Source: Cyanophora paradoxa CCMP329 (taxonomy: Eukaryota > Plantae > Glaucophyta). From it: 64,000 bases of DNA. Under the pieces are notes generated by a model. It made no database searches and was not told the origin of the DNA. It was given only the letters and a program-made list of their open reading frames with translations. Every line of letters begins with the position of its first letter. Position 1 is the stretch's first letter. Below are positions 3,545 through 64,000 of the stretch, piece by piece. The stretch lies in contig QPMI01000056.1 in the NCBI GenBank assembly GCA_004431415.1, positions 372,001 through 436,000 of the forward strand, given 5' to 3'. The position numbers and the translations under genes are program-made.

Positions 3545-3700
3545 CAGAGAGCCTTCTCATCGCTTCGGCGATCGCTAGGCCCTGGTACCGAGTACTCCGG
3601 GGCGATCGCTAGCGCGAACCGTCGGACGACGGACGCGGCGCCGGCGATCGCTTGAAAAAGGCCCCGGCCCGATCCGAGCCCATGGCCGGCGGGCATAGTG

Positions 3701-4294
3701 AACATAGTGCCAAAATGTCGCCCCGAAAACACGTTTTTTAGCAGGATCGGAAGACAGCGCGCCCAGGCAGGTCCGAGGGGCGGTTCCGGGACGGACCTAC
3801 TGGCTCAGAGCTGCTTGCGCTGGGCCCGCCGGGCGACGCCATAGTTGAGAGCTCGAGTCCCTGCCGACGCCCTGAAACCGCAGTACTCCGGGGCGATCGC
3901 TAGCGCGAACCGTCGGAACATAGTGCCAAAATGTCGCCCCGAAAACACGTTTTTTAGCAGGATCGGAAGACAGCGCGCCCAGGCAGGTCCGAGGGGCGGT
4001 TCCGGGACGGACCTACTGGCTCAGAGCTGCTTGCGCTGGGCCCGCCGGGCGACGCCATAGTTGAGAGCTCGAGTCCCTGCCGACGCCCTGAAACCGCAGT
4101 ACTCCGGGGCGATCGCTAGCGCGAACCGTCGGAACATAGTGCCAAAATGTCGCCCCGAAAACACGTTTTTTAGCAGGATCGGAAGACAGCGCGCCCAGGC
4201 AGGTCCGAGGGCGGTTCCGGGACGGACCTACTGGCTCAGAGCTGCTTGCGCTGGCCCGCCGGGCGACGCCATAGTTGAGAGCTCGAGTCCCTGC
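3701..4294 (+). repeat. 216-bp tandem repeat (2 full units plus a partial) inside the left arm of element A
   Basis: aacatagtgccaaaatg starts at 3701, 3917 and 4133. The linker re-uses agtactccggggcgatcgctagcgcgaaccgtcgg from 3591-3625. Confidence 0.92.
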
Positions 4295-5171
4295 GCGCCG
4301 CCTTACAGCTGCCGAGGATGGGGCGACGGCTGCAGAATTCGAAGATGAGTACCTCGGACAAGCGAAAGCGTGTAGCTAGCGCGCCGCCGGCGCCGCGGGT
4401 GAGCCGATGAAGCAAGCGATGTGTACTCCTCGCGTGCGCGGGCGCGGCGAAGACGCCTGCGGGTCGGGCGTGGCGCCGCGGGGCTGAGCACGGCGTGCGC
4501 GCGGCAGTGCGCATGCGCAGCGGACGGAATTCGCGCGCTGCATGCATGGCCGGGCGCGCGGAAGTTCCTTTTTTTCCTATTCTTCCCCCCTGCGCTTCTC
4601 CCCCCTGTTCATTCCCCCCCTAAGTTAGCCACCGGTGGCTAACTTGCGATCGAAGGGTACAGAGTTCGGCCTCGTGAAATTGATCTCATACAAAACCAAC
4701 GATGTCGTAGAACCCTAGACTATAGCTGCATGCGGAATCAGGCTATCTGCAGTCCTACAAAAGCCTTGCACCGCTGCAGTAGCCCTTTTGCCTGCTCTTC
4801 GTTCGCGAAGATGTCAGGACGCCCCGCGCGGGGCGCGCGGAACCACTCTGTGGACGTGACCACAAATGGTGCGCATGCTGTCGGATCGCGCAGGTGGTGG
4901 CCACTGCACACCACCCGACCCCAGCGCGCGCGGGAGAACAGGACCTCCAGGACCCGGTCGACCCAACACTTCGCTTTGAATGTAGACCCGGCGGTCGTGC
5001 GCAGCCCGTTGTTACTTTTGCAAGCGTCTCGACTCGAGCGCCACCTAACAGCATATTGAGAGCAGAATCGCAAGATAAGTTGCAGTAAGAAATGCACCGA
5101 GCTCAAGAATTGCAATTGCTTCAAAGCATTGAGCTCGTCCAGGGTCCGATCCCGGCAGTCAGGGGCGGGAG

Positions 5172-6360
5172 CTCGACGCTGGCGGCCGGCTCGTCGTCGT
5201 CGAAGAGGGGCCGCCTGTGTAGGGCGGCCCAGCCCCTGGCGCCCTGTGAACGAAGAAGCAAAGGAGAGAGCCGCTCAGGACTCGGAAAGTAAAGAAGCTC
5301 AGAGGAAAGACGCTCGCCTTGTCGGAGTCCCGCCCCTCCCCCGCACCCCGGAGTCGGGCTTGACGTTGTAGTTCTCGAGGAGGGGGCGGACGGCGCCGGG
5401 GTACATGAGGACCGCCTGCCGCAGGAGGGCGGCGGCGAGGGCCGCGGCAGAGGGCGGGGGCGGCGCCGGCGAGGCGGGGTCCAGCGTGTGCGAGAAGAGG
5501 CGCCGGAGGACCTGCCGCGCTTCAGTCTTAGAGGAGATTCGGAGGGGCGCAGGGCACCGGCTCGTCGACGGGCGCGGCGCCGCCGTCCCGCGCCACGCGC
5601 ATGAGCGCGTACGCTGCGAGCCCGGCTCGGCGCCAGGAAAAAAGGGGGAGAGGCTAAGTGGGGTACCGAGGAGTTGAGGGCGATGGGGAGGAAGAGGGGC
5701 GGCTCCCGCCTCGAGAGGGGCGGCTCCCGCACGAACGAGGCGGAGCGCCCGGGGAGCGCCGGCGCCGCCACCAGCTCCAGAAGGAACTTGTACTCCCTGA
5801 AGAAAAATGAGGTGGGGGGGGGGGAAGTTGGGGGGGGGGGAAGGTTATGGGGTACCTGGCGCGGAGGGCGAAGTAGTCGATGCACTGGAGCACCCCCATC
5901 AGGTCACTGTCGGGGTCCAGCGCAAGCAGCAGCTTGGCCGTCTCTGGAGGTACGACGTTCGGTTCGAATCCGAGTAGGGGGAAGCGGTCGAGGGGTACCG
6001 AGGGAGGTGCGGGAGCAGCCGCCGCGAATGAGCATCTGCAGGCGCCGGAAGACCAGGCCCTGGGGGTGGCGGGGTGAGTCCGGAGGAGGTACAGGTTATC
6101 CTCGGGGTACAACGGGTTCTCTGCGCACTTGTTCTCCATGACTGCGAAGTCGAGGCGGCAGGCGCCGCTCGCCGGCTTGAACTGCGGGTGCCTGCCGGGG
6201 ACGGAGCTCAAAACCAAGTGAACGAACTGCAGCGCAACGCATCCTCCGCCCCGCCGCGCCCGTGCCCGCGCCCCGCCCCGCACCAGGCTGCCTCGAGGCA
6301 GTAGAGGGCGCGGTCGAGGAGCTCGGTCGCCGCGTCCAGCTCGCCACTGTACTTGTAGAT
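5172..6360 (-). pseudogene. TCF25: TCF25/Rqc1 internal fragment, copy 2
   Basis: Near-identical to 1484-2675. Confidence 0.86.
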
Positions 6361-7224
6361 CTGAGGCCGGCCCGCCGGCTTCAGGCCCCGGGCCAGGCTT
6401 CGTGTGCTCGGGGTTCGTGTGCTCGGGGAGGGGCGGGCCCGGGCCCGGGCAGGGCCGGGGGAGGGCGGGCCAGGGGGAGGGGCGGGCCCGGGGCCCGGGC
6501 GGGGCCGGGGGAGGGGCGCGCCCGGGCCCGGGGCGGGCCGGGGGGAGAGGCGGGGCTGGGAGAGGGGCGGGCCGGGGGAGGGGCGGGCCGGGGGAGGCGG
6601 AAGGGCGGGGCGGGGCCCTCCGAAGAGGGGCTGGGAGAGGGGAAGGAGGTCCACGTCCTCTCTTCCCCCCGAAGAGGGCACTCCGGGGGTAGGGAGGTCC
6701 GCCTCCTCTCTCCGGGGTCAGCATGCTGCGGAGACGGGCATAAGACACCGAAAACCAGCGATCGCTTGGCCAATGAGAAGGCTGTGGACGTCAAGCCCGC
6801 GGCGACCGTTAGAACTGAGAACACAGAAGCGATCGCCGGCCCAGCAGCTCTTTGTTAGAGATCGGATCCGCTGGGTATGGCGCCGAACACAAAGCGATCG
6901 CCGAGCAATGAGAAGGCTCTATGCGCGGGGCAGAGATGTAGCGATCGCATTGAATAGAGAATCTCTATGCGAGCATGCCCACAGCGCTACGGGAGGCGGG
7001 CACGCACTGCAGGCGTTGGCGTTGGCTGGTGCGACGAACTTGAAGCAGCTCCTGCGCAAGCGATCGCCGGTCTATGCGCGGGGCAGAGATGTAGCGATCG
7101 CATTGAATAGAGAATCTCTATGCGAGCATGCCCACAGCGCTACGGGAGGCGGGCACGCACTGCAGGCGTTGGCGTTGGCTGGTGCGACGAACTTGAAGCA
7201 GCTCCTGCGCAAGCGATCGCCGGT

Positions 7225-8957
7225 CAGAGAGCCTTCTCATCGCTTCGGCGATCGCTAGGCCCTGGTACCGAGTACTCCGGGGCGATCGCTAGCGCGAACC
7301 GTCGGACGACGGACGCGGCGCCGGCGATCGCTTGAAAAAGGCCCCGGCCGATCCGAGCCCATGGCCGGCGGGCATAGTGAACATAGTGCCAAAATGTCGC
7401 CCCGAAAACACGTTTTTTAGCAGGATCGGAAGACAGCGCGCCCAGGCAGGTCCGAGGGGCGGTTCCGGGACGGACCTACTGGCTCAGAGCTGCTTGCGCT
7501 GGGCCCGCCGGGCGACGCCATAGTTGAGAGCTCGAGTCCCTGCGCGCCGCCTTACAGCTGCCGAGGATGGGGCGACGGCTGCAGAATTCGAAGATGAGTA
7601 CCTCGGACAAGCGAAAGCGTGTAGCTAGCGCGCCGCCGGCGCCGCGGGTGAGCCGATGAAGCAAGCGATGTGTACTCCTCGCGTGCGCGGGCGCGGCGAA
7701 GACGCCTGCGGGTCGGGCGTGGCGCCGCGGGGCTGAGCACGGCGTGCGCGCGGACAGTGTCGGGCACCAGCGCAGCCCGCGCACCGCAGACACTTCAGAT
7801 GCGCGCAAGAGACGATGATGTAAAGCTAGCCGCCGTGAAAGCCTGACGGCAGATGAGCTGGCCGTGAAGGAAAGAATGCGCGGCGGTTGGCTGCGTGAGA
7901 GCGGACCGGAAGGGATGCGACGCGACCCGCGCCGTTGTAGTCTGACATAACGGAGGTGTGTGTAGGCGAAACGAGGGCGTCCCGCGTCCAGCGAAGCCTC
8001 CCGAACAGCGCGCGCCACACACACGCGGCGGCCCACCGCCAGCGAAGCCGTCGTGGTCTCGAAAGCTCTGAAGCCGTACGGAGAGGTAAGTGAGGGCGCG
8101 AAGAACGACATCAAAGACCGAGGATACCAGATCTCTTTGTGACGGCGATGGCGGACGCCCTGCTTAACGCCGGGCTGGACGCGCTTATAGAGCTGGCGAA
8201 AGCGGAACTCGACGATGACGATGATGAAGAACACGAGTGTGATGCTATGGTCGAGGAGGAGGCCGTGGCTGTAGTCGGGTGTAGCAGCCAAGGCGGCGGA
8301 GCTTCTGGCGCAGGCGAGGCGGTCGCCTGCCACAAGTAAGACGCAGTACGCAGGTCAGAAGCGAAATGGCCGACCAAGGCAAGCCTGGAAGCTCGAACGA
8401 CAGGAACGGTGCTTGCTGCTCTTCTGGCGGCCGAAACGGGTCGGAACTTGATTAAACATGGCTGCGGTCTATCAAAATGCGCCTCCAATGCTCTATTTAG
8501 CGCGCAGGAGCTGCGGGAGCTGCGTCTCGCTCTCAGAACGGGTACAGGAACGCTTTCGTTTACTCTACCCCTGCTCGAGTTCTCCCCGAGTCAGCAACAG
8601 TCACGAGTTCTCCCAACATCGTCCGCGCCCCGGCTTCGAAGAAGATACAGCGATTTCACAAAGCATTTAACACACTTTCACCAAGTTTCACGTGGGAAGA
8701 ACGTGCTCGATCGCGCCGCCCAGGCAAGCACCAGGCACGGGGGGTGGAAGCACTGCCTGGATACTGGCTTTCGCCCATTCATCCGTGTTCAGCGATCGCT
8801 TGGCCAATGAGAAGGCTGTGGACGTCAAGCCCGCGGCGACCGTTAGAACTGAGAACACAGAAGCGATCGCCGGCCCAGCAGCTCTTTGTTAGAGATCGGA
8901 TCCGCTGGGTATGGCGCCGAACACAAAGCGATCGCCGAGCAATGAGAAGGCTCTATG
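7225..8957. mobile_element. Element B, complete non-autonomous TIR element (~1.73 kb)
   Basis: Left TIR 7225-7255 and right TIR 8928-8957, with three GCGATCGC per end. The interior is a decayed spliced gene. Confidence 0.75.
7594..8790 (+). pseudogene. Decayed spliced gene inside element B (possible transposase 5' relic)
   Basis: MSTSDKRKRVASAPPAP-[gtgag..acag]-..DARKRR*CKASRRESLTADELAVKERMRG-[gt..ctgac..tag]-AKRGRPASSEA...MADALLNAGLDALIELAKAELDDDDDEEHE. Stops and frameshifts are shared by the copies. No DDE core recognised. Confidence 0.4.
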
Positions 8958-9778
8958 CGCGGGGCAGAGATGTAGCGATCGCATTGAATAGAGAATCTCT
9001 ATGCGAGCATGCCCACAGCGCTACGGGAGGCGGGCACGCACTGCAGGCGTTGGCGTTGGCTGGTGCGACGAACTTGAAGCAGCTCCTGCGCAAGCGATCG
9101 CCGGTCTCAGAGTAGAGCTCGAGCTTCAGATTCATGCGATACTGAACCCTTACCCGTTCATTCTGGACGGTGACGCGGAGATCAATCCTATCATCGGGGT
9201 AATTGATCTAAATTTCTGTTAGCAATGGCCACGTGCTGACTAGTACTCGGAGGCCCGTAAGTTGGCCCATCCATTGGCCCGGACCGTTGGCGTCCGTCGC
9301 CGTAACGGCCGCCCTCCCAGGAGACTGTTAATGACGCCATTATGACGGTACCGATGATACTTGACGCAGAATGGACCAATCGCGCAACGCCGGCCAAGCG
9401 TTTTTTCTCGCCGTCTAAAAATTCGTGGGCCGACTGATTTTCCCCGCCATGAGGCCGGTTTGGGGGGTACACCCTCCGGCGTGTCGACATCTCATCATAA
9501 GCCGGAGCACGCCGCGATGGGCGCCCGAGCGCTGGGAGCAACGCATATGTGAGCCTCTCTCTTAGTGTGCGACCGTACGAAGTGCAAACTAGCTCCCTAT
9601 GCGCCTGGAGCACTTTTTCAGCAATCCTGCGAAGTCCGCTGGGGGAGCCGACATCGACGTTCGACAGCGCAAGCCGATCTGTATGAGCGGCCTGTGAGCG
9701 AATCCCTCGCTCCCGGCGGTGCCTCAGCCGCGCGGACTCGATCTTGGCGGACCACGAGCGACCGACGGCGCCCCCGGT

Positions 9779-9973
9779 ATGCCGGTACGAGGCCTAGCTG
9801 GTGCGCATGGATTGCCCTGCGACAAGTTACGAAGGGCGTCGCGCGTATGCGCCTCCCTGACCCGCGTGACCGCAGAGTTCCTGAGGGACCGCGGTCTCCT
9901 CCGGACCGATTCGATAGAGGCGTTGCGAGGCACCTCTATAGGTGCGGCCTGGCATTTTCCTCTTTAGACGTTC
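9779..9973 (+). pseudogene. MKT1: MKT1 exons 1-2 only (breakpoint b1), with upstream region 9106-9778
   Basis: MPVRGLA-EFLRDRGLLRTDSIEALRGTSI, then intron 2 breaks at ttagacgttc|tctc|cgaacgacagg. Confidence 0.85.
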
Positions 9974-9977
9974 TCTC

Positions 9978-10540
9978 CGAACGACAGGAACGGTGCTTGC
10001 TGCTCTTCTGGCGGCCGAAACGGGTCGGGAACTTGATTAAACATGGCTGCGGTCTATCAAAATGCGCCTCCAATGCTCTATTTAGCGCGCAGGAGCTGCG
10101 GGAGCTGCGTCTCGCTCTCAGAACGGGTACAGGAACGCTTTCGTTTACTCTACCCCTGCTCGAGTTCTCCCCGAGTCAGCAACAGTCACGAGTTCTCCCA
10201 ACATCGTCCGCGCCCCGGCTTCGAAGAAGATACAGCGATTTCACAAAGCATTTAACACACTTTCACCAAGTTTCACGTGGAAGAACGTGCTCGATCGCGC
10301 CGCCCAGGCAAGCACCAGGCACGGGGGTGGAAGCACTGCCTGGATACTGGCTTTCGCCCATTCATCCGTGTTCAGCGATCGCTTGGCCAATGAGAAGGCT
10401 GTGGACGTCAAGCCCGCGGCGACCGTTAGAACTGAGAACACAGAAGCGATCGCCGGCCCAGCAGCTCTTTGTTAGAGATCGGATCCGCTGGGTATGGCGC
10501 CGAACACAAAGCGATCGCCGAGCAATGAGAAGGCTCTATG
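9978..10540. mobile_element. Right part of element B re-entered by junction b1 (also 26895-27458)
   Basis: Matches ~8394-8957 including the right TIR. Confidence 0.75.
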
Positions 10541-11361
10541 CGCGGGGCAGAGATGTAGCGATCGCATTGAATAGAGAATCTCTATGCGAGCATGCCCACA
10601 GCGCTACGGGAGGCGGGCACGCACTGCAGGCGTTGGCGTTGGCTGGTGCGACGAACTTGAAGCAGCTCCTGCGCAAGCGATCGCCGGTCTCAGAGTAGAG
10701 CTCGAGCTTCAGATTCATGCGATACTGAACCCTTACCCGTTCATTCTGGACGGTGACGCGGAGATCAATCCTATCATCGGGGTAATTGATCTAAATTTCT
10801 GTTAGCAATGGCCACGTGCTGACTAGTACTCGGAGGCCCGTAAGTTGGCCCATCCATTGGCCCGGACCGTTGGCGTCCGTCGCCGTAACGGCCGCCCTCC
10901 CAGGAGACTGTTAATGACGCCATTATGACGGTACCGATGATACTTGACGCAGAATGGACCAATCGCGCAACGCCGGCCAAGCGTTTTTTCTCGCCGTCTA
11001 AAAATTCGTGGGCCGACTGATTTTCCCCGCCATGAGGCCGGTTTGGGGGTACACCCTCCGGGCGTGTCGACATCTCATCATAAGCCGGAGCACGCCGCGA
11101 TGGGCGCCCGAGCGCTGGGAGCAACGCATATGTGAGCCTCTCTCTTAGTGTGCGACCGTACGAAGTGCAAACTAGCTCCCTATGCGCCTGGAGCACTTTT
11201 TCAGCAATCCTGCGAAGTCCGCTGGGGGAGCCGACATCGACGTTCGACAGCGCAAGCCGATCTGTATGAGCGGCCTGTGAGCGAATCCCTCGCTCCCGGC
11301 GGTGCCTCAGCCGCGCGGACTCGATCTTGGCGGACCACGAGCGACCGACGGCGCCCCCGGT

Positions 11362-13540
11362 ATGCCGGTACGAGGCCTAGCTGGTGCGCATGGATTGCCC
11401 TGCGACAAGTTACGAAGGGCGTCGCGCGTATGCGCCTCCCTGACCCGCGTGACCGCAGAGTTCCTGAGGGACCGCGGTCTCCTCCGGACCGATTCGATAG
11501 AGGCGTTGCGAGGCACCTCTATAGGTGCGGCCTGGCATTTTCCTCTTTAGACGTTCGTCCTGGGTGCCGAAATACGAAGCACGGCTTGCAGGCATCGATG
11601 GCTACGTTTGGCTTCGGAAGCTCCAAATCCGGGAGCCGCTGCGAGAAGCGACGGGCGACGGGTGCGACCCGCCGTGGTGTCCTCGTCGCCTCCCGTTCCG
11701 CGGCGGATCGAATCGCGCGTGCGTGCATGCGTGCAGGTCGCAGGCGCTGCCGGTCGCGCTTTCGGAGCAGCTTCGGGTGTTCGAGGAGGCGGGAATCAAG
11801 CCCTGCTTCGTGTTTGCGGGGCTGAACATCCCGCGGAAGGAGCGCCCGTTCACGCAGCCCGACGATCGGCTGGCGGCTCGGCAGCGCGCCTGGCAGGAGC
11901 ACGCGGCCAACAACCTCCGGGCCGCAGTGGCGCTCTTCTCGCAGTCCGGTGCGGCCCGCGCTTGCCTGCCCGCCCACCCGCTGCGCCGCTGACGTTCGCC
12001 GTCAGCTTCGGCCGCGGTGGTATCCCCTGATCTCGTCGCTGACGTGATTCGATTCCTGCGGGGTCGCAATGCCGACGCGATCCGCGCGCCGTACCTCAGC
12101 TGGGCCCAGGTTCGCCGCCTTCCCCCCCTTTCACCTCGCCTCGCCCGCACCGAGCGCCGCCGCAGCTGGGGTACATGGAGGGCGACGACGTGCGGATGGT
12201 GGACGGGGTACACGCGCAGCTGGAAGTTCTGCTCTTTGGCGCCCGCCGCGTCATCGTCTCGCTCGACCTGGCGGTACCCTGCCCGACCTTCCCCCCCCCC
12301 GTCCCTCGCTCACCGATCGCCTCGTAGGAGGGTACCTTCGAGTGGGTCGACCGCGACACGGTGCTGGCAGCCGCTGGCGCCTCCGCGGATCAATTTCTGG
12401 ACGCCTGCCTTCTCTCCGGATTCGATTTCCTGGGCACGTTCCCGCCCCTCGCGGGACACCCCCTCCACCGTCCTCCCGGTGCCCTTCTTCCCCCACCGCA
12501 CCGGCACCCCGGTACCCCGACCGCGCTGACGTACCCCCAGCCGCGATCGACCTCGTCCTGAGGTACCGAACGGGGTACGGCGCCGTGCGGGCCATGATGG
12601 GCGGCAACGGGCCCTCCTCCCCGGACCGGTACAGTCCACAGCCTCTCCCAAAACCGTCCTTTTAACGTCGTACCCCCCACCTCAAAATAGCGGCGGGACA
12701 CGTACACGGACCAGTTCCTGCGGGCGCGGGCGCTGGTCCAACACCACGTGGTCCTCGAGCCCTCGGGCGCGCGGCCCTCAACGCCGCGCTCGCCCCCGCG
12801 TGCGCCCCACCGTACCCTCCTCCGAGCCTGAAACCAGAACTAGCGCTCCTTCCACTTTAGGACACAGGACTCCCCTAGCCTTCCCCTCTCTCGACCTCGC
12901 CCCGCCCCTGCCTAGCGGCTCTTGACCTCGCTCTTCTCGTTCCCCCACCGGACCCGCCCCATCCCGCCTAGAAACTAGAACTAGGGCAAGGGACCCGCTC
13001 TGCGGCTCGCCCCTCGTCCTGGCTCCCCCAGCCTAGCCAGCCCCCTCGGCCTCTTTCCCCTCCCCCCCACCCCCTCCCCCCCCCTCTCACCCCCCTCCAC
13101 GTACAGGGACCTGGACGAGGTGCTGGCCCGCGGCTGCCCGACGAGCTCTTCCACCTCCTCGCCGCCGGCTGCCTCGAGGTGATTGATCCTTACTGTTTGA
13201 TTTTGATGCAACATTACGTTACCTTCTAACGTTACGACCTTCTAACGTTACGACATACCTAAGACCTTTAATCTTTTGATCTTTAATGAGACCTAAGACT
13301 TTAGACGCCGCCGCGGCCGGCTGCCTCGAGGTGATCCATCCTGGACCTCCAACCTCGCCTCATCCACGCCTCGCCCCTCATCTCCTGGCGCGCTCACGCT
13401 CCCGCCCCTCCTCCTCCCTCGCCCGCCCTCCGCAGGCGTCGCTGCTGAGCGCGCTGGTGCTCGGCATGGACCGGGAGTTGCCCCCCCGTCGACTCCGAGG
13501 CCTACCGCGCGCCTCCGCCGGTGAGTCAAGCATCTAGATA
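11362..13540 (+). pseudogene. MKT1: 3'-truncated MKT1 copy (b2)
   Basis: Matches the full copy from the ATG to the intron after YRRASA. Confidence 0.88.
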
Positions 13541-16313
13541 GTGAACATAGTGCCAAAATGTCGCCCCGAAAAACACGTTTTTTAGCAGGATCGGAAGACA
13601 GCGCGCCCAGGCAGGTCCGAGGGGCGGTTCCGGACGGACCTACTGGCTCAGAGCTGCTTGCGCTGGCCCGCCGGGCGACGCCATAGTTGAGAGCTCGAGT
13701 CCCTGCGCGCCGCCTTACAGCTGCCGAGGATGGGGCGACGGCTGCAGAATTCGAAGATGAGTACCTCGGACAAGCGAAAGCGTGTAGCTAGCGCGCCGCC
13801 GGCGCCGCGGGTGAGCCGATGAAGCAAGCGATGTGTACTCCTCGCGTGCGCGGGCGCGGCGAAGACGCCTGCGGGTCGGCGTGGCGCCGCGGGGCTGAGC
13901 ACGGCGTGCGCGCGGCAGTGCGCATGCGCAGCGGACGGAATTCGCGCGCTGCATGCATGGCCGGCGCGCGGAAGTTCCTTTTTTTCCTATTCTTCCCCCT
14001 GCGCTTCTCCCCCCTGTTCATTCCCCCCTAAGTTAGCCACCGGTGGCTAACTTGCGATCGAAGGGTACAGAGTTCGGCCTCGTGAAATTGATCTCATACA
14101 AAACCAACGATGTCGTAGAACCCTAGACTATAGCTGCATGCGGAATCAGGCTATCTGCAGTCCTACAAAAGCCTTGCACCGCTGCAGTAGCCCTTTTGCC
14201 TGCTCTTCGTTCGCGAAGATGTCAGGACGCCCCGCGCGGGGCGCGCGGAACCACTCTGTGGACGTGACCACAAATGGTGCGCATGCTGTCGGATCGCGCA
14301 GGTGGTGGCCACTGCACACCACCCGACCCCAGCGCGCGCGGGGAGAACAGGACCTCCAGGACCCGGTCGACCCAACACTTTCGCTTTGAATGTAGACCCG
14401 GCGGTCGTGCGCAGCCCGTTGTTACTTTTGCAAGCGTCTCGACTCGAGCGCCACCTAACAGCATATTGAGAGCAGAATCGCAAGATAAGTTGCAGTAAGA
14501 AATGCACCGAGCTCAAGAATTGCAATTGCTTCAAAGCATTGAGCTCGTCCAGGGTCCGATCCCGGCAGTCAGGGGCGGGAGCTCGACGCTGGCGGCCGGC
14601 TCGTCGTCGTCGAAGAGGGCCGCCTGTGTAGGGCGGCCCAGCCCTGGCGCCCTGTGAACGAAGAAGCAAAGGAGAGAGCCGCTCAGGACTCGGAAAGTAA
14701 AGAAGCTCAGAGGAAAGACGCTCGCCTTGTCGGAGTCCCGCCCCTCCCCCGCACCCCGAGTCGGGCTTGACGTTGTAGTTCTCGAGGAGGGGGCGGACGG
14801 CGCCGGGGTACATGAGGACCGCCTGCCGCAGGAGGGCGGCGGCGAGGGCCGCGGCAGAGGGCGGGGCGGCGCGGCGAGGCGGGTCCAGCGTGTGCGAGAA
14901 GAGGCGCCGGAGGACCTGCCGCGCTTCAGTCTTAGAGGAGATTCGGAGGGGCGCAGGGCACCGGCTCGTCGACGGCGCGGCGCCGCCGTCCCGCGCCACG
15001 CGCATGAGCGCGTACGCTGCGAGCCCGGCTCGGCGCCAGGAAAAAAGGGGGAGAGGCTAAGTGGGGTACCCGAGGAGTTGAGGGCGATGGGGAGGAAGAG
15101 GGGCGGCTCCCGCCTCGAGAGGGCGGCTCCCGCACGAACGAGGCGGAGCGCCCGGGAGCGCCGGCGCCGCCACCAGCTCCAGAAGGAACTTGTACTCCTG
15201 AAGAAAATGAGGTGGGGGGGGGGGAAGTTGGGGGGGGGGGAAGGTTATGGGGTACCTGGCGCGGAGGGCGAAGTAGTCGATGCACTGGAGCACCCCATCA
15301 GGTCACTGTCGGGGTCCAGCGCAAGCAGCAGCTTGGCCGTCTCTGGAGGTACGACGTTCGGTTCGAATCCGAGTAGGGGGGAAGCGGTCGAGGGGTACGA
15401 GGGAGGTGCGGGAGCAGCCGCGCGAATGAGCATCTGCAGGCGCGGAAGACCAGGCCCTGGGGGTGGCGGGGTGAGTCCGGAGGAGGGTACAGGTTATCCT
15501 CGGGGTACAACGGGTTCTCTGCGCACTTGTTCTCCATGACTGCGAAGTCGAGGCGGCAGGCGCCGCTCGCCGCTTGAACTGCGGGTGCCTGCCGGGGACG
15601 GAGCTCAAAACCAAGTGAACGAACTGCAGCGCAACGCATCCTCCGCCCGCCGCCCGTGCCCGCGCCCGCCCGCACCAGGCTGCCTCGAGGCAGTAGAGGG
15701 CGCGGTCGAGGAGCTCGGTCGCCGCGTCCAGCTCGCCACTGTACTTGTAGATCTGAGGCCGGCCCGCCGGCTCAGGCCCCGGGCCAGCTTCGTGTGCTCG
15801 GGGGTTCGTGTGCTCGGGGGAGGGGCGGGCCCGGGGCCCGGGGCAGGGCCGGGGGGAGGGCGGGGCCAGGGGGAGGGCGGGCCCGGGGCCCGGGCGGGGC
15901 CGGGGGAGGGGCGCGCCCGGGCCCGGGCGGGCGGGGGGAGAGGCGGGCTGGGGAGAGGGCGGGCCGGGGGAGGGCGGGGCCGGGGGAGGCGGAAGGCGGG
16001 GCGGGGCCCTCCGAAGAGGGCTGGGAGAGGGGAAGGAGGTCCACGTCCTCCTTCCCCCCGAAGAGGGCACTCCGGGGGGTAGGGAGGTCCGCCTCCTCTC
16101 TCCGGGGTCAGCATGCTGCGGAGACGGGCATAAGACACCGAAAACCAGCGATCGCTTGGCCAATGAGAAGGCTGTGGACGTCAAGCCCGCGGCGACCGTT
16201 AGAACTGAGAACACAGAAGCGATCGCCGGCCCAGCAGCTCTTTGTTAGAGATCGGATCCGCTGGGTATGGCGCCGAACACAAAGCGATCGCCGAGCAATG
16301 AGAAGGCTCTATG
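13538..16313. mobile_element. Element A, left-truncated (b2); contains TCF25 fragment 14582-15752
   Basis: Same as 439-3244. Confidence 0.7.
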
Positions 16314-16612
16314 CGCGGGGCAGAGATGTAGCGATCGCATTGAATAGAGAATCTCTATGCGAGCATGCCCACAGCGCTACGGGAGGCGGGCACGCACTGC
16401 AGGCGTTGGCGTTGGCTGGTGCGACGAACTTGAAGCAGCTCCTGCGCAAGCGATCGCCGGTCTTGCGCGGGCAGAGATGTAGCGATCGCATTGAATAGAG
16501 AATCTCTATGCGAGCATGCCCACAGCGCTACGGGAGGCGGGCACGCACTGCAGGCGTTGGCGTTGGCTGGTGCGACGAACTTGAAGCAGCTCCTGCGCAA
16601 GCGATCGCCGGT

Positions 16613-18322
16613 CAGAGAGCCTTCTCATCGCTTCGGCGATCGCTAGGCCCTGGTACCGAGTACTCCGGGGCGATCGCTAGCGCGAACCGTCGGACGACGG
16701 ACGCGGCGCCGGCGATCGCTTGAAAAAGGCCCCGGCCCGATCCGAGCCCATGGCGGCGGGCATAGTGAACATAGTGCCAAAATGTCGCCCCGAAAACACG
16801 TTTTTTAGCAGGATCGGAAGACAGCGCGCCCAGGCAGGTCCGAGGGCGGTTCCGGGACGGACCTACTGGCTCAGAGCTGCTTGCGCTGGCCGCCGGGCGA
16901 CGCCATAGTTGAGAGCTCGAGTCCCTGCGCGCCGCCTTACAGCTGCCGAGGATGGGGCGACGGCTGCAGAATTCGAAGATGAGTACCTCGGACAAGCGAA
17001 AGCGTGTAGCTAGCGCGCCGCCGGCGCCGCGGGTGAGCCGATGAGCAAGCGATGTGTACTCCTCGCGTGCGCGGGCGCGGCGAAGACGCCTGCGGGTCGG
17101 GCGTGGCGCCGCGGGGCTGAGCACGGCGTGCGCGCGGACAGTGTCGGGCACCAGCGCAGCCCGCGCACCGCAGACACTTCAGATGCGCGCAAGAGACGAT
17201 GATGTAAAGCTAGCCGCCGTGAAAGCCTGACGGCAGATGAGCTGGCCGTGAAGGAAAGAATGCGCGGCGGTTGGCTGCGTGAGAGCGGACCGGAAGGATG
17301 CGACGCGACCCGCGCCGTTGTAGTCTGACATAACGGAGGTGTGTGTAGGCGAAACGAGGCGTCCCGCGTCCAGCGAAGCCTCCCGAACAGCGCGCGCCAC
17401 ACACACGCGCGGCCCACCGCCAGCGAAGCCGTCGTGGTCTCGAAAGCTCTGAAGCCGTACGGAGAGTAAGTGAGGGCGCGAAGAACGACATCAAAGACCG
17501 AGGATACCAGATCTCTTTGTGACGGCGATGGCGGACGCCCTGCTTAACGCCGGCTGGACGCGCTTATAGAGCTGGCGAAAGCGGAACTCGACGATGACGA
17601 TGATGAAGAACACGAGTGTGATGCTATGGTCGAGGAGGAGCCGTGCTGTAGTCGGGTGTAGCAGCCAAGGCGGCGGAGCTTCTGGCGCAGGCGAGGCGGT
17701 CGCCTGCCACAAGTAAGACGCAGTACGCAGGTCAGAAGCGAAATGGCCGACCAAGGCAAGCTGGAAGCTCGAACGACAGGAACGGTGCTTGCTGCTCTTC
17801 TGGCGGCCGAAACGGGTCGGGAACTTGATTAACATGGCTGCGGTCTATCAAAATGCGCCTCCAATGCTCTATTTAGCGCGCAGGAGCTGCGGGAGCTGCG
17901 TCTCGCTCTCAGAACGGGTACAGGAACGCTTTCGTTTACTCTACCCTGCTCGAGTTCTCCCCGAGTCAGCAACATCACGAGTTCTCCCAAATCGTCCGCG
18001 CCCGGCTTCGAAGAAGATACAGCGATTCACAAAGCATTTAACACACTTCACCAAGTTTCACGTGGGAAGAACGTGCTCGATCGCGCCGCCCAGGCAAGCA
18101 CCAGGCACGGGGGGTGGAAGCACTGCCTGGATACTGGCTTTCGCCATTCATCCGTGTTCAGCGATCGCTTGGCAATGAGAAGGCTGTGGACGTCAAGCCC
18201 GCGCGACCGTTAGAACTGAGAACACAGAAGCGATCGCCGGCCCAGCAGCTCTTTGTTAGAGATCGGATCGCTGGGTATGGCGCCGAACACAAAGCGATCG
18301 CCGAGCAATGAGAAGGCTCTAT
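16613..18322. mobile_element. Element B copy
   Basis: Both TIRs present. Many 1-nt deletions, probably low consensus quality. Confidence 0.72.
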
Positions 18323-19138
18323 CGCGGGGCAGAGATGTAGCGATCGCATTGAATAGAGAATCTCTATGCGAGCATGCCACAGCGCTACGGGAGGCGGGCA
18401 CGCACTGCAGGCGTTGGCGTTGGCTGGTGCGACGAACTTGAAGCAGCTCCTGCGCAACGATCGCCGGTCTCAGAGTAGAGCCGAGCTTCAGATTCATGCG
18501 ATACTGAACCCTTACCCGTTCATTCTGGACGGTGACGCGGAGATCAATCCTATCATCGGGGTAATTGATCTAAATTTCTGTTAGCAATGGCACGTGCTGA
18601 CTAGTACTCGGAGGCCCGTAAGTTGGCCATCCATTGGCCCGGACCGTTGGCGTCCGTCGCCGTAACGGCCGCCCTCCCAGGAGACGTTAATGACGCCATT
18701 ATGACGGTACCGATGATACTTGACGCAGAATGGACCAATCGCGCAACGCCGGCCAAGCGTTTTTTCTCGCCGTCTAAAAATTCGTGGGCCGACTGATTTT
18801 CCCCGCCATGAGGCCGGTTTGGGGGGTACACCCTCCGGGCGTGTCGACATCTCATCATAAGCCGGAGCACGCCGCGATGGGCGCCCGAGCGCTGGGAGCA
18901 ACGCATATGTGAGCCTCTCTCTTAGTGTGCGACCGTACGAAGTGCAAACTAGCTCCCTATGCGCCTGGAGCACTTTTTCAGCAATCCTGCGAAGTCCGCT
19001 GGGGGAGCCGACATCGACGTTCGACAGCGCAAAGCCGATCTGTATGAGCGGCCTGTGAGCGAATCCCTCGCTCCCGCGGTGCCTCAGCCGCGCGGACTCG
19101 ATCTTGGCGGACCACGAGCGACCGACGGCGCCCCCGGT

Positions 19139-22100
19139 ATGCCGGTACGAGGCCTAGCTGGTGCGCATGGATTGCCCTGCGACAAGTTACGAAGGGCGTC
19201 GCGCGTATGCGCCTCCCTGACCCGCGTGACCGCAGAGTTCCTGAGGGACCGCGGTCTCCTCCGGACCGATTCGATAGAGGCGTTGCGAGGCACCTCTATA
19301 GGTGCGGCCTGGCATTTTCCTCTTTAGACGTTCGTCCTGGGTGCCGAAATACGAAGCACGGCTTTGGCAGGCATCGATGGCTACGTTTGGGCTTCGGAAG
19401 CTCCAAATCCGGGAGCCGCTGCGAGAAGCGACGGGCGACGGGTGCGACCCCGCCGTGGTGTCCTCGTCGCCTCCCGTTCCGCGGCGGATCGAATCGCGCG
19501 TGCGTGCATGCGTGCAGGTCGCAGGCGCTGCCGGTCGCGCTTTCGGAGCAGCTTCGGGTGTTCGAGGAGGCGGGAATCAAGCCCTGCTTCGTGTTTGCGG
19601 GGCTGAACATCCCGCGGAAGGAGCGCCCGTTCACGCAGCCCGACGATCGGCTGGCGGCTCGGCAGCGCGCCTGGCAGGAGCACGCGGCCAACAACCTCCG
19701 GGCCGCAGTGGCGCTCTTCTCGCAGTCCGGTGCGGCCCGCGCTTGCCTGCCCGCCCACCCGCTGCGCCGCTGACGTTCGCCGTCAGCTTCGGCCGCGGTG
19801 GTATCCCCTGATCTCGTCGCTGACGTGATTCGATTCCTGCGGGGTCGCAATGCCGACGCGATCCGCGCGCCGTACCTCAGCTGGGCCCAGGTTCGCCGCC
19901 TTCCCCCCTTTCACCTCGCCTCGCCCGCACCGAGCGCCGCCGCAGCTGGGGTACATGGAGGGCGACGACGTGCGGATGGTGGACGGGGTACACGCGCAGC
20001 TGGAAGTTCTGCTCTTTGGCGCCCGCCGCGTCATCGTCTCGCTCGACCTGGCGGTACCCTGCCCGACCTTCCCCCCCCGTCCCTCGCTCACCGATCGCCT
20101 CGTAGGAGGGTACCTTCGAGTGGGTCGACCGCGACACGGTGCTGGCAGCCGCTGGCGCCTCCGCGGATCAATTTCTGGACGCCTGCCTTCTCTCCGGATT
20201 CGATTTCCTGGGCACGTTCCCGCCCCTCGCGGGACACCCCCCCTCCACCGTCCTCCCCGGTGCCCTTCTTCCCCCCACCGCACCGGCACCCCGGTACCCC
20301 CCGACCGCGCTGACGTACCCCCCAGCCGCGATCGACCTCGTCCTGAGGTACCGAACGGGGTACGGCGCCGTGCGGGCCATGATGGGCGGCAACGGGCCCT
20401 CCTCCCCCGGACCGGTACAGTCCACAGCCCTCTCCCAAAACCGTCCTTTTAACGTCGTACCCCCCACCTCAAAATAGCGGCGGGACACGTACACGGACCA
20501 GTTCCTGCGGGCGCGGGCGCTGGTCCAACACCACGTGGTCCTCGAGCCCTCGGGCGCGCGGCCCCTCAACGCCGCGCTCGCCCCCGCGTGCGCCCCACCG
20601 TACCCTCCTCCGAGCCTGAAACCAGAACTAGCGCTCCTTCCACTTTAGGACACAGGACTCCCCTAGCCTTCCCCCTCTCTCGACCTCGCCCCGCCCCCTG
20701 CCTAGCGGCTCTTGACCTCGCTCTTCTCGTTCCCCCACCGGACCCGCCCCATCCCGCCTAGAAACTAGAACTAGGGCAAGGGGACCCGCTCTGCGGCTCG
20801 CCCCTCGTCCTGGCTCCCCAGCCTAGCCAGCCCCCTCGGCCTCTTTCCCCTCCCCCCACCCCTCTCCCCCCCACCCCCCCCTCTCACGTACAGGGACCTG
20901 GACGAGGTGCTGGGCCCGCGGCTGCCCGACGAGCTCTTCCACCTCCTCGCCGCCGGCTGCCTCGAGGTGATTGATCCTTACTGTTTGATTTTGATGCAAC
21001 ATTACGTTACCTTCTAACGTTACGACCTTCTAACGTTACGACATACCTAAGACCTTTAATCTTTTGATCTTTAATGAGACCTAAGACTTTAGACGCCGCC
21101 GCGGCCGCTGCCTCGAGGTGATCCATCCCTGGACCTCCAACCTCGCCTCATCCACGCCTCGCCCCTCATCTCCTGGCGCCGCTCACGCTCCGCCCCCTCC
21201 TCCTCCCTCGCCCGCCCTCCGCAGGCGTCGCTGCTGAGCGCGCTGGTGCTCGGCATGGACCGGGAGTTGCCCCCCCCGTCGACTCCGAGGCCTACGCCGC
21301 GCCTCCGCCGGTGAGTCAAGCATCTAGATACTAGAACAATTAGAACAACGAGAACAACTAGATACTAGAACAAATAGACGCGCCTCACTCTAGAACAACT
21401 AGACTCGACTCCGAGGCCTACCGCCGCGCCTCCGCCGGTGAGTCAAGCATCTAGATACTAGAACAATTAGAACAACGAGAACAACTAGATACTAGAACAA
21501 ATAGACGCGCCTCACTCTAGAACAACTAGACTCGACTCCGAGGCCTACCGCCGCGCCTCCGCCGGTGAGTTAGTTAGTGAGTTGTTGTTGTTGTTGGAGC
21601 AACTAGAGCAACTAGATACTAGAACAATTAGAACAGCTAGAAGAACTAGATACTAGAACAAATAGACGCGCCTCCGCCGCGCCTCGATACTAGAACAACT
21701 AGACTCGACTCCGAGGCCTACCGCCGCGCCTCCGCCGGTGAGCGAGTGAGTTGGGAGTTAGTTGGAGCAATCGACACGATCGATACGTTAAAGCCGATCG
21801 ATACCAGAACAGCCAGCAACTGTTACTAGAACGATAAACGCCTCCTGATCGCTACTAGAACAGCTAGACGAACAATTAGAGCGTCGGCCCACCTACCGCC
21901 GCGCCTCCGCCGGTGCCGCTTGCACCCTCGCCCTCAACCTCCGCCGCACACATCTAGCCGATGAACGACGCTTCCGTCCCGTCCCGTCCTGACCCCGGCC
22001 CGGCCCCTCCTCTGCAGACTCGCTGACGATCCGGGCGACGGCGCTGGCGGCGCTGGCGGCGCCCCTGCCCGAGTCGCTGCGGGCGCGGCCCGTCTGCACC

Positions 22101-22479
22101 ATCCGCTGGTTCGACGCGGTGCGTGGAAGGGCGCTCCAGGGCGCCCCGCGCTTAGTGGCGGCGCCAGTCTGACCTCAGGCCCGCAGGTGACCGAGTACCC
22201 CCTGCCCCACGGGGAGGACCCCTTGACCGTCCGCGGGGTACGCGACCCGCCTCCATCCCTTCTTCTTCTTCTTCTTCTTCTTCTTCTCCGGTCCCTGAGG
22301 CGGGGGCCCTCGCAGGCCGGGGGCCGCGCCGAGCCGCTCTCGCCCTGGTGCCCCCCGCACGCCGACATCCTGGCCGAGGCCTCCCGCCAGGCGAGCGCTC
22401 CCCTGCCCCGGGCGAAGGGGCGGACGAACGCTCCTCCAGCGAGCGGGTGGGCGGGGCGGACGAACGCTCCTCCAGCGAG
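19139..22479 (+). pseudogene. MKT1: 3'-truncated MKT1 copy (b3)
   Basis: Matches the full copy to the intron after WCPPHADILAEASRQ, then joins the TCF25 fragment. Confidence 0.88.
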
Positions 22480-23851
22480 GGGCGCAGGGCACCGGCTCGT
22501 CGACGGGCGCGGCGCCGCCGTCCCGCGCCACGCGCATGAGCGCGTACGCTGCGAGCCCGGCTCGGCGCCAGGAAAAAAGGGGGGAGAGGCTAAGTGGGGG
22601 TACCCGAGGAGTTGAGGGCGATGGGGAGGAAGAGGGGCGGCTCCCGCCTCGAGAGGGGCGGCTCCCGCACGAACGAGGCGGAGCGCCCGGGGAGCGCCGG
22701 CGCCGCCACCAGCTCCAGAAGGAACTTGTACTCCCTGAAGAAAAATGAGGTGGGGGGGGGGGAAGTTGGGGGGGGGGGGAAGGTTATGGGGTACCTGGCG
22801 CGGAGGGCGAAGTAGTCGATGCAACTGGAGCACCCCATCAGGTCACTGTCGGGGTCCAGCGCAAGCAGCAGCTTGGCGTCTCTGGAGGTACGACGTTCGG
22901 TTCGAATCCGAGTAGGGGGGAAGCGGTCGAGGGGGTACCGAGGGAGGTGCGGGAGCAGCCGCCGCGAATGAGCATCTGCAGGCGCCGGAAGACAGGCCCT
23001 GGGGGTGGCGGGGTGAGTCCGGAGGAGGGTACAGGTTATCCTCGGGGGTACAACGGGTTCTCTGCGCACTTGTTCTCCATGACTGCGAAGTCGAGGCGGC
23101 AGGCGCCGCTCGCCGGCTTGAACTGCGGGTGCTGCCGGGGACGGAGCTCAAACAAGTGAACGAACTGCAGCGCAACGCATCCTCCGCCCCGCCGCGCCCG
23201 TGCCCGCGCCCCGCCCGCACCAGGCTGCCTCGAGGCAGTAGAGGCGCGGTCGAGGAGCTCGGTCGCCGCGTCCAGCTCGCCACGTACTTGTAGATCTGAG
23301 GCGGCCCGCCGGCTTCAGGCCCCGGGCCAGGCTTCGTGTGCTCGGGGGTTCGTGTGCTCGGGGGAGGGCGGGCCCGGGCCGGGCAGGGCCGGGGGAGGGG
23401 CGGGCCAGGGGAGGGCGGGCCGGGCCGGGGCGGGGCCGGGGGGAGGCGCGCCCGGGGCCGGGGCGGGCCGGGGGGAGAGGCGGGGCTGGGGAGAGGGGCG
23501 GGGCCGGGGGAGGGGCGGGGCCGGGGGGAGGCGAAGGCGGGGGCGGGGCCCTCCGAAGAGGGCTGGGAGAGGGGAAGAGGTCCACGTCCTCTCTTCCCCC
23601 CGAAGAGGGCACTCCGGGGGGTAGGGAGGTCCGCCTCCTCTCTCCGGGGGTCAGCATGCTGCGGAGACGGGCATAAGACACCGAAAACCAGCGATCGCTT
23701 GGCAATGAGAAGGCTGTGGCGTCAAGCCCGGCGACCGTTAGAACTGAGAACACAGAAGCGATCGCCGGCCCAGCAGCTCTTTGTTAGAGATCGGATCCGC
23801 TGGGTATGGCGCCGACACAAAGCGATCGCCGAGCAATGAGAAGGCTCTATG
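22477..23851. mobile_element. Right part of element A (b3); TCF25 fragment 22477-23295 on the minus strand
   Basis: Starts at gaggggcgcagggcacc within a TCF25 exon and ends at the right TIR. Confidence 0.7.
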
Positions 23852-24150
23852 CGCGGGGCAGAGATGTAGCGATCGCATTGAATAGAGAATCTCTATGCGA
23901 GCATGCCCACAGCGCTACGGGAGGCGGCACGCACTGCAGCGTTGGCGTTGGCTGGTGCGACGAACTTGAAGCAGCTCCTGCGCAAGCGATCGCCGGTCTA
24001 TGCGCGGGGCAGAGATGTAGCGATCGCATTGAATAGAGAATCTCTATGCGAGCATGCCCACAGCGCTACGGGAGGCGGGCACGCACTGCAGGCGTTGGCG
24101 TTGGCTGGTGCGACGAACTTGAAGCAGCTCCTGCGCAAGCGATCGCCGGT

Positions 24151-25885
24151 CAGAGAGCCTTCTCATCGCTTCGGCGATCGCTAGGCCCTGGTACCGAGTA
24201 CTCCGGGGCGATCGCTAGCGCGAACCGTCGGACGACGGACGCGGCGCCGGCGATCGCTTGAAAAAGGCCCCGGCCCGATCCGAGCCCATGGCCGGCGGGC
24301 ATAGTGAACATAGTGCCAAAATGTCGCCCCGAAAACACGTTTTTTAGCAGGATCGGAAGACAGCGCGCCCAGGCAGGTCCGAGGGGCGGTTCCGGGACGG
24401 ACCTACTGGCTCAGAGCTGCTTGCGCTGGGCCCGCCGGGCGACGCCATAGTTGAGAGCTCGAGTCCCTGCGCGCCGCCTTACAGCTGCCGAGGATGGGGC
24501 GACGGCTGCAGAATTCGAAGATGAGTACCTCGGACAAGCGAAAGCGTGTAGCTAGCGCGCCGCCGGCGCCGCGGGTGAGCCGATGAAGCAAGCGATGTGT
24601 ACTCCTCGCGTGCGCGGGCGCGGCGAAGACGCCTGCGGGTCGGGCGTGGCGCCGCGGGGCTGAGCACGGCGTGCGCGCGGACAGTGTCGGGCACCAGCGC
24701 AGCCCGCGCACCGCAGACACTTCAGATGCGCGCAAGAGACGATGATGTAAAGCTAGCCGCCGTGAAAGCCTGACGGCAGATGAGCTGGCCGTGAAGGAAA
24801 GAATGCGCGGCGGTTGGCTGCGTGAGAGCGGACCGGAAGGGATGCGACGCGACCCGCGCCGTTGTAGTCTGACATAACGGAGGTGTGTGTAGGCGAAACG
24901 AGGGCGTCCCGCGTCCAGCGAAGCCTCCCGAACAGCGCGCGCCACACACACGCGGCGGCCCACCGCCAGCGAAGCCGTCGTGGTCTCGAAAGCTCTGAAG
25001 CCGTACGGAGAGGTAAGTGAGGGCGCGAAGAACGACATCAAAGACCGAGGATACCAGATCTCTTTGTGACGGCGATGGCGGACGCCCTGCTTAACGCCGG
25101 GCTGGACGCGCTTATAGAGCTGGCGAAAGCGGAACTCGACGATGACGATGATGAAGAACACGAGTGTGATGCTATGGTCGAGGAGGAGGCCGTGGCTGTA
25201 GTCGGGTGTAGCAGCCAAGGCGGCGGAGCTTCTGGCGCAGGCGAGGCGGTCGCCTGCCACAAGTAAGACGCAGTACGCAGGTCAGAAGCGAAATGGCCGA
25301 CCAAGGCAAGCCTGGAAGCTCGAACGACAGGAACGGTGCTTGCTGCTCTTCTGGCGGCCGAAACGGGTCGGGAACTTGATTAAACATGGCTGCGGTCTAT
25401 CAAAATGCGCCTCCAATGCTCTATTTAGCGCGCAGGAGCTGCGGGAGCTGCGTCTCGCTCTCAGAACGGGTACAGGAACGCTTTCGTTTACTCTACCCCT
25501 GCTCGAGTTCTCCCCGAGTCAGCAACAGTCACGAGTTCTCCCAACATCGTCCGCGCCCCGGCTTCGAAGAAGATACAGCGATTTCACAAAGCATTTAACA
25601 CACTTTCACCAAGTTTCACGTGGGAAGAACGTGCTCGATCGCGCCGCCCAGGCAAGCACCAGGCACGGGGGGTGGAAGCACTGCCTGGATACTGGCTTTC
25701 GCCCATTCATCCGTGTTTCAGCGATCGCTTGGCCAATGAGAAGGCTGTGGACGTCAAGCCCGCGGCGACCGTTAGAACTGAGAACACAGAGCGATCGCCG
25801 GCCCAGCAGCTCTTTGTTAGAGATCGGATCCGCTGGGTATGGCGCCGAACACAAAGCGATCGCCGAGCAATGAGAAGGCTCTATG
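24151..25885. mobile_element. Element B copy
   Basis: Both TIRs present. Confidence 0.75.
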
Positions 25886-26695
25886 CGCGGGGCAGAGATG
25901 TAGCGATCGCATTGAATAGAGAATCTCTATGCGAGCATGCCCACAGCGCTACGGAGGCGGGCACGCACTGCAGCGTTGGCGTTGGCTGGTGCGACGAACT
26001 TGAAGCAGCTCCTGCGCAAGCGATCGCCGGTCTCAGAGTAGAGCTCGAGCTTCAGATTCATGCGATACTGAACCCTTACCCGTTCATTCTGGACGTGACG
26101 CGGAGATCAATCCTATCATCGGGGTAATTGATCTAAATTTCTGTTAGCAATGCCACGTGCTGACTAGTACTCGGAGGCCCGTAAGTTGGCCCATCCATTG
26201 GCCCGGACCGTTGGCGTCCGTCGCCGTAACGGCCGCCCTCCAGGAGACTGTTAATGACGCCATTATGACGTACGATGATACTTGACGCAGAATGGACCAA
26301 TCGCGCAACGCCGGCCAAGCGTTTTTTCTCGCCGTCTAAAAATTCGTGGGCCGACTGATTTTCCCCGCCATGAGGCGGTTTGGGGGTACACCCTCCGGGC
26401 GTGTCGACATCTCATCATAAGCCGGAGCACGCCGCGATGGGCGCCCGAGCGCTGGGAGCAACGCATATGTGAGCCTCTCTCTTAGTGTGCGACCGTACGA
26501 AGTGCAAACTAGCTCCCTATGCGCCTGGAGCACTTTTTCAGCAATCCTGCGAAGTCCGCTGGGGAGCCGACATCGACGTTCGACAGCGCAAGCCGATCTG
26601 TATGAGCGGCCTGTGAGCGAATCCCTCGCTCCCGCGGTGCCTCAGCCGCGCGGACTCGATCTTGGCGGACCACGAGCGACGACGGCGCCCCCGGT

Positions 26696-26890
26696 ATGCC
26701 GGTACGAGGCCTAGCTGGTGCGCATGGATTGCCCTGCGACAAGTTACGAAGGGCGTCGCGCGTATGCGCCTCCCTGACCCGCGTGACCGCAGAGTTCCTG
26801 AGGGACCGCGGTCTCCTCCGGACCGATTCGATAGAGGCGTTGCGAGGCACCTCTATAGGTGCGGCCTGGCATTTTCCTCTTTAGACGTTC
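26696..26890 (+). pseudogene. MKT1: MKT1 exons 1-2 only (b1)
   Basis: Same junction as at 9973. Confidence 0.85.
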
Positions 26891-59560: not shown

Positions 59561-59599
59561 AGACAGACAGACAGACGCGCGGCGTGAGAAGACGGCCGA

Positions 59600-63751: not shown

Positions 63752-64000
63752 ATGGCCGACAGAGGTTTGAAGCGCGCGCGTGAGGATGACGTCTCGCCCG
63801 TGGAGAGCTCGTTTAGCACAACAGGATCTTCGTCGGCAGCTGCAGCGAAGGCGGACGGGAGCGCCGATGGAGTGAATCATTTCGCGCGGCTGCCGGACGA
63901 GCTGGTGCAACGCATTTTCAGCGAGCTCGAGGCGACGGAGGCGTACGAAACGTGCCAGCTCTGGTCGATGGATCGTCGGTTCCGGCAGATCATGCGGGGC
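63752..64000 (+). CDS. Second F-box paralog, runs off the right edge
   Basis: MADRGLKRAREDD...VNHFARLPDELVQRIFSELEATEAYETCQLWSMDRRFRQIMRG, clearly homologous to the upstream F-box. Not in the ORF track. Confidence 0.85.
   Translation, partial: MADRGLKRAREDDVSPVESSFSTTGSSSAAAAKADGSADGVNHFARLPDELVQRIFSELEATEAYETCQLWSMDRRFRQIMRG

Follow-up and report, generated by a model that had tools for sequence, protein, structure and literature searches.

Most descriptions of DNA transposons that capture genes come from flowering plants and animals. The closest described systems are the Pack-TIR (terminal inverted repeat), Pack-MULE and Pack-CACTA elements (Tan et al. 2021, PMC8277862), the non-autonomous Helitron2/Helentron elements (Bao and Jurka 2013, PMC3627910; Chellapan et al. 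2016, PMC5148889) and the tandem transposon dimers and arrays of Drosophila (McGurk and Barbash 2018, PMC5932611). Helitron2 elements follow set rules: asymmetric repeats of 8-15 bp, the 3′ one ~20-50 bp from the end, and two hairpins (PMC3627910, PMC5148889). In the published genome analysis of the glaucophyte Cyanophora paradoxa, 11.5% of the genome consists of unknown repeats (PMC6704402). We analysed a 64,000-nucleotide stretch of C. paradoxa CCMP329 (GCA_004431415.1, contig QPMI01000056.1, positions 372,001 to 436,000), hereafter the window. It contains two adjacent units, A and B, with shared ends and different interiors, which an earlier note had read as a P-like transposon pair caught before (B) and after (A) gene capture. 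Our data suggest that A and B are probably non-autonomous units of an abundant C. paradoxa DNA-transposon family with swappable interiors, whose units form trains, which captured a piece of the host gene TCF25, and whose array in the window was amplified locally.

Shared ends and the 54.5-kb array

Both units are bounded by an inverted repeat of 31-32 bp with CA...TG as its outer bases. The repeat copies of B (7225-7256 and 8927-8957) match at 29 of the 32 aligned positions, and A carries the same repeat at 3545-3576 and 6893-6923. The local alignment score was 53, compared to a maximum of 36 among 500 shuffles. The left arm of B is 533 bp long and ~99% identical to the arm sequence of A, which reaches 963 bp because a 216-bp piece is present in triplicate. 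From the right arm through the 153-bp block that follows it, A and B are identical (315/315). The repeat of ~30 bp and both arms described in the earlier note are thus real; its boundaries needed correction, as the arm of A is longer and the conserved right block extends 148 bp past the right repeat in all copies. The repeats also recur beyond A and B, as the note had anticipated, with 7 left and 15 right repeats in the window. We observed an identical 153-bp block directly after every right repeat, and an identical upstream flank at all 7 left repeats. Therefore, the window holds no independent insertion.

We searched for target-site duplications of 2-11 bp at the ends first proposed (3545/6923 and 7225/8957) and found none. 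The 7-8 bp duplication of the P superfamily and the 8-bp duplication of hAT elements, which the earlier note had expected there, were absent, although trains could hide the former. Seven candidate end pairs yielded one match of 3 bp, the duplication length of PIF/Harbinger elements (CAG, with the ends set at 7228/9107), which is within chance.

A and B are not a special pair. They are two units of a 54.5-kb head-to-tail array whose units are 97.5-99.7% identical (self-BLAST) and differ mostly by homopolymer indels. The interior of A occurs four times in the window, that of B six times, the right part of the TCF25 piece seven times, and the DNA behind B, which is the promoter block of the gene MKT1, eight times. 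The main unit (~7.55 kb) comprises the left arm, B interior, right block, and MKT1 promoter with its 5′ part, then a joint into the TCF25 piece and a right block with the 153-bp piece doubled. Joints between modules lie inside MKT1, TCF25, the left arm or the B interior, and show a few shared bases or a short templated insert. This joint pattern would fit template switching and tandem amplification rather than separate jumps. The last unit continues into the complete MKT1 gene.

To place the ends of the unit, we compared positions 6661-9973 with short-read contigs. In two DNA runs, the 153-bp block was as deep and as variable as the arms. Read depth collapsed only after 9105 (~40-fold or more), with a unique contig beginning at 9078; a second sharp fall was seen near 7760. 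The motif AGCGATCGCC keeps a single direction across the whole right block with its 153-bp piece and the opposite direction in the left arm, and its orientation switches exactly at the 7224/7225 joint. We did not observe this octamer in the MKT1 block or in the unique 9.5 kb, the non-family DNA of the window. Because of the depth and variability of the 153-bp block and the polarity of the motif, we place the travelling unit from the left arm through 9105-9107, with the right repeat 148 bp inside it. Positions 9105-9107 are the sole natural boundary between family and non-family DNA within the window. The 148 bp beyond the right repeat may belong to the element itself or may be a spacer that accompanies the units in trains.

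The unique flank behind B (9105-9112) opens with TCAGAG, the same six bases as the left end (7224-7229), offset by two. This sharing may reflect a target preference or a remnant end. A palindrome with 7-bp arms in the 153-bp block (8987-9001) resembles both outer repeat ends joined.

Single arm contigs had depths of ~6,000-25,000 in run X1, compared to 434 for the MKT1-promoter contig, which has eight copies in the window. The ratio points to hundreds of family copies, with depth read as an indication and not as a copy number. B-type interiors, including a diverged, internally deleted variant, had depths of ~630-2,100 and are a minority type by this measure. One run contained another interior starting at 7753, and arm variants were many. 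The family thus has several interior types (B type, gene X, TCF25 and the one at 7753); the earlier note had suggested seeking other cargoes between the same arms.

Interiors of the units

For spliced models, we queried single exons or proteins already in the databases, and the matching gene models were EukProt entries of C. paradoxa. Next to its left arm, A carries the 3′ end of an orphan gene, gene X. The last coding exon is 88% identical to the end of model P0001 and 38% identical over 94 aa to P0008, which comes from an unrelated run. The gene X family comprises 16 models on 12 contigs, some of them in tandem, in two subfamilies with 56-59% identity. Second-subfamily models P0005, P0011 and P0012 (three contigs) run into the left arm in the orientation seen in A, and yet are only 56-59% identical to P0001. 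We also observed a complete spliced homolog, lacking the GCGATCGC octamer, at L001:1-3338 (SRR31724264, the unrelated run); open frames upstream of it on L001 had no Pfam match. The multi-contig family, the diverged models abutting the arm and the complete homolog in an unrelated run suggest that gene X is an old resident of the element family and not a captured host gene. The second gene fragment reported earlier in A is accordingly present as a last exon, and what had been called a host-gene capture is the end of a multicopy family gene.

We found no Pfam match that would indicate a function for gene X. Its Atlas matches were DUF6698/DUF6532 with low recognition, which is a lead only, and its AlphaFold model (pLDDT 40) was unusable. 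Neither gene X nor the family DNA patterns had a match in metagenome and viral collections.

B contains no trace of gene X. Because A keeps a gene X 3′ end that B lacks, A would not be derived from B, whose interior is also a minority type by depth. The comparison suggests that A derives from a gene-X unit in which the front was replaced by the TCF25 piece and ~145 bp of filler; this filler had no match among the gene X relatives. Pre- and post-capture states therefore do not lie side by side, as B appears to be a separate interior type.

The TCF25/Rqc1 piece in A was confirmed as an internal fragment with introns, encoded in minus-strand exons (Pfam Tcf25, E = 4e-8; exon 5852-5944, E = 4e-7). 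Similarity reaches ~5150, an approximate boundary, and what we take to be the usual TCF25 tail is missing. The 21 TCF25 gene models that we identified are distributed over 6 contigs, where they often lie in runs, and all are of the cassette type. Each is preceded by arm-derived sequence, starts no earlier than Pfam position 48 and lacks the native front end. Model P0023 (tig00000215) joins TCF25 to MKT1 antisense exactly like the window's own joint, so that the window probably lies on tig00000215. In P0039 (tig00000180), B-interior exons stand ahead of TCF25; the A-then-B order, which recurs within the array, therefore exists on another contig as well. Because an intron-containing internal fragment lies between shared arms and is multiplied on these contigs, capture of a host TCF25 piece at the DNA level, as the earlier note had it, is very likely. 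RNA depth over 6661-6771 was 0 in two RNA-type runs.

Splicing was seen in unit B. Two runs, whose RNA type is guessed, contain five minus-strand GT-AG introns in the B interior and left arm. One intron spans the joint between units, from 7475 in the left arm to 7050 in the 153-bp block. Loose contig ends at 7192 and 7008 coincide with minus-strand GT donors recognised in the sequence. At 7008, the transcript is joined to a variant of the region around the window's 6724 acceptor, and at 7192 to another interior. Because of these partners, we conclude that, at other loci, left-arm transcripts are spliced to interior sequence of the unit in front. The decayed spliced gene proposed for B needs correction: the introns with RNA support belong to the minus strand and extend into the arm, and we found no known protein family or homolog for the B interior. 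Its plus-strand frames had no homolog among 5.8 billion proteins and no Pfam match, with Atlas scores of 0.77. One G at 8442 is missing from the window relative to all short-read contigs.

As a more speculative possibility, the unit joint might supply a promoter and spliced leader exons to the interior in front, be it gene X or captured pieces. If true, such cassette-train arrays would shuffle cargo and also express it, an organisation that has not been described in Pack elements. The family offers a test of whether tandem-element joints drive cargo expression.

Origin of the units and mobilising enzyme

In the explanation we favour, family units share the 533-bp left arm and the 315-bp right block, have differing interiors and often lie head to tail. 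Gene X would be the long-term resident of the interior. In A, a piece of host TCF25 DNA would have replaced all of gene X except its last exon, with template switching in the course of repair or replication as the most likely route, while B would represent a separate interior type. Transcripts that run leftward through a left arm are, in family members at other loci, spliced over the joint to the interior of the unit in front. Later, a stretch that takes in part of A, B and the initial 4 kb of the MKT1 locus would have been amplified locally in tandem through short-homology joints, so that the window copies would be amplified copies and not separate jumps. Several points weigh against this explanation. 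The left end is inferred from the joint alone. We did not find an intact TCF25 donor in a search that covered proteins of 200-637 aa, a range that full-length TCF25 may exceed. We saw neither a dispersed copy in flanks of its own nor a target-site duplication or an autonomous partner. Contig depth does not equal copy number, the assembly may have affected the exact number of array copies and some of the variant joints, and the RNA status of runs X15 and X17 is a guess.

The earlier note had favoured cut-and-paste elements of P-like or hAT type with the 31-bp repeats as their ends, with A arising from B by gap repair that imported two host-gene pieces. The 31-32 bp inverted repeat with its CA...TG outer bases is real, the subterminal motifs are oriented, and a few bases are shared at the point where A and B diverge. 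This origin is nonetheless very unlikely, as the proposed ends lack a duplication, the 153-bp block accompanies the right arm in every copy and is equally deep in short reads, and gene X belongs to the family but is missing from B. A THAP, P or hAT protein, which the note had expected, was found neither in the window nor among the gene X relatives. The right block that passes the repeat also speaks against a P- or hAT-like family, and the earlier note's most striking idea, a P-like family with its states before and after capture side by side, is not upheld. A macrosatellite or segmental-duplication hub, no longer or never mobile, would instead spread by unequal exchange and template switching and collect nearby DNA on the way. 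Tandem amplification with short-homology joints would explain everything in the window, and all visible copies are in trains. We regard such a hub as unlikely, because the inverted repeat, the mirror-image motif polarity, the sharp arm boundaries and the spread over many contigs are transposon-like.

A rolling-circle (Helitron2/Helentron-like) element would start with TCAG at 7224, have asymmetric repeats and end near 9104-9105. Rolling-circle copying would then account for the trains, the doubled 3′ blocks, the gene capture and the carry-over of the MKT1 flank. The subterminal right repeat, the lack of an end duplication and the head-to-tail arrays agree with this, and the start resembles the TCAG of FoHeli1/2 (PMC5148889). 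However, the repeat is 31-32 bp long instead of 8-15 bp and lies 148 bp from the end instead of 20-50 bp. The terminal hairpins have weak stems whose folding does not exceed that of shuffled sequences (z −0.2 to −1.2), and there is no T-rich end. The array joints lie inside MKT1, TCF25 and the arm and not at element ends, and no Rep/helicase partner was seen. Overall, we consider a rolling-circle origin possible but doubtful.

Pfam and protein searches found no transposase gene in the window, including no Myb or Harbinger transposase gene, and mobility would depend on an enzyme encoded elsewhere. A Harbinger-type cut-and-paste enzyme is our leading, still tentative, candidate, at less than even chances. 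A rolling-circle enzyme and an enzyme of some other type are each a lesser prospect, and a P or hAT enzyme is hardly to be expected.

Neighbouring features and known systems

Coordinates of the features are collected in Table 1. Truncated MKT1 runs head-on into the TCF25 piece, and eight promoter-block copies precede the single complete MKT1. A 126-bp repeat in the MKT1 intron region (53355-53960, also 45790-46410) contains a duplicated exon end and splice donor and an A-rich CTAGAACAA motif. In both RNA-type runs, a contig fuses 29 bases of the last MKT1 exon (56378-56406) to the middle of the right arm (8897/6863). This is no splice joint and may be another array variant or an artefact. In two of the eight units, a 1,583-bp duplication is present (8394-9973 repeated at 9978-11556, also at 25321-28471). 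Short-read contigs of X1 and X11 cross both of its break points unbroken; the duplication may therefore be strain-specific or an assembly effect. Beyond MKT1, we noted minus-strand WD40-like exons at ~59500-61100 and, by eye, two F-box-like genes in tandem (61400-63260 and 63870-64000).

Table 1. Features of units A and B, the array and MKT1, in window positions
Feature	Position	Strand	Details
Head-to-tail array	1-54523		main unit ~7.55 kb plus rearranged variants; runs off left window edge, ends inside MKT1
Left inverted repeat of A	3545-3576	+	self-comparison, shuffle test
Left arm of A	3545-4507	+	533-bp arm with 216-bp triplication, 3695-4281
Gene X 3′ end	4508-5003	-	last coding exon 5003-4738 plus ~230 bp downstream; multicopy element-borne orphan gene
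Filler, ~145 bp, between gene X and TCF25	5004-5150		46% GC over 5004-5130
Internal TCF25/Rqc1 fragment with introns	5150-6361	-	begins at Pfam position 48, both ends cut; left boundary approximate
GC-rich intron-like stretch and 96-bp inner right-arm extension	6362-6756	-	splice acceptor near 6724; variants in other copies
Right arm of A	6757-6923	+	ends in right repeat 6893-6923
Two copies of 153-bp block	6919-7224	+	minus-strand splice sites: acceptor 7050, donors 7008 and 7192
Left arm of B	7225-7757	+	includes left repeat 7225-7256; holds minus-strand transcript exons
B interior	7758-8790	-	spliced RNA; introns near 7539-7600, 7705-7783, 7842-7905, 8068-8127, 8326-8373
Right block of B	8791-9105	+	right arm, right repeat 8927-8957, one 153-bp block
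MKT1 promoter region and first exons, co-amplified	9106-9973	+	RNA intron near 9800-9875; eight copies in window
Complete MKT1 gene	51204-56549	+	leaves array at right edge; XPG_N, MKT1_N, MKT1_C (E = 3e-18), exon by exon

The family inflates the gene count of C. paradoxa, as at least 21 TCF25-like and at least 16 gene X models derive from it. A cargo-swapping family in a glaucophyte extends the phenomenon of gene capture. Our literature search found no report on this family, on Cyanophora Harbingers or on such trains.

The C. paradoxa family is a Pack-like family arranged in trains. Like Pack-TIR, Pack-MULE and Pack-CACTA elements (Tan et al. 2021, PMC8277862), its units are transposase-less, enclose an intron-containing host-gene fragment between repeats and arms, and are present in several copies, with chimeric transcripts plausible. 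Unlike those elements, the Cyanophora units lie in head-to-tail trains without distinct target-site duplications seen, their right repeat is 148 bp inside a conserved block, and one cargo is the family's own gene. With non-autonomous Helitron2/Helentron elements (PMC3627910, PMC5148889), they share the asymmetric repeat placement, a 5′ T, tandem arrays and gene capture, whereas repeat length and end distance misfit the published rules and the hairpins do not stand out from shuffles. As in the Drosophila dimers and arrays (McGurk and Barbash 2018, PMC5932611), head-to-tail copies appear to seed larger arrays; in contrast to these, the Cyanophora interiors differ, and the amplified unit includes flanking host DNA, the 5′ part of MKT1.

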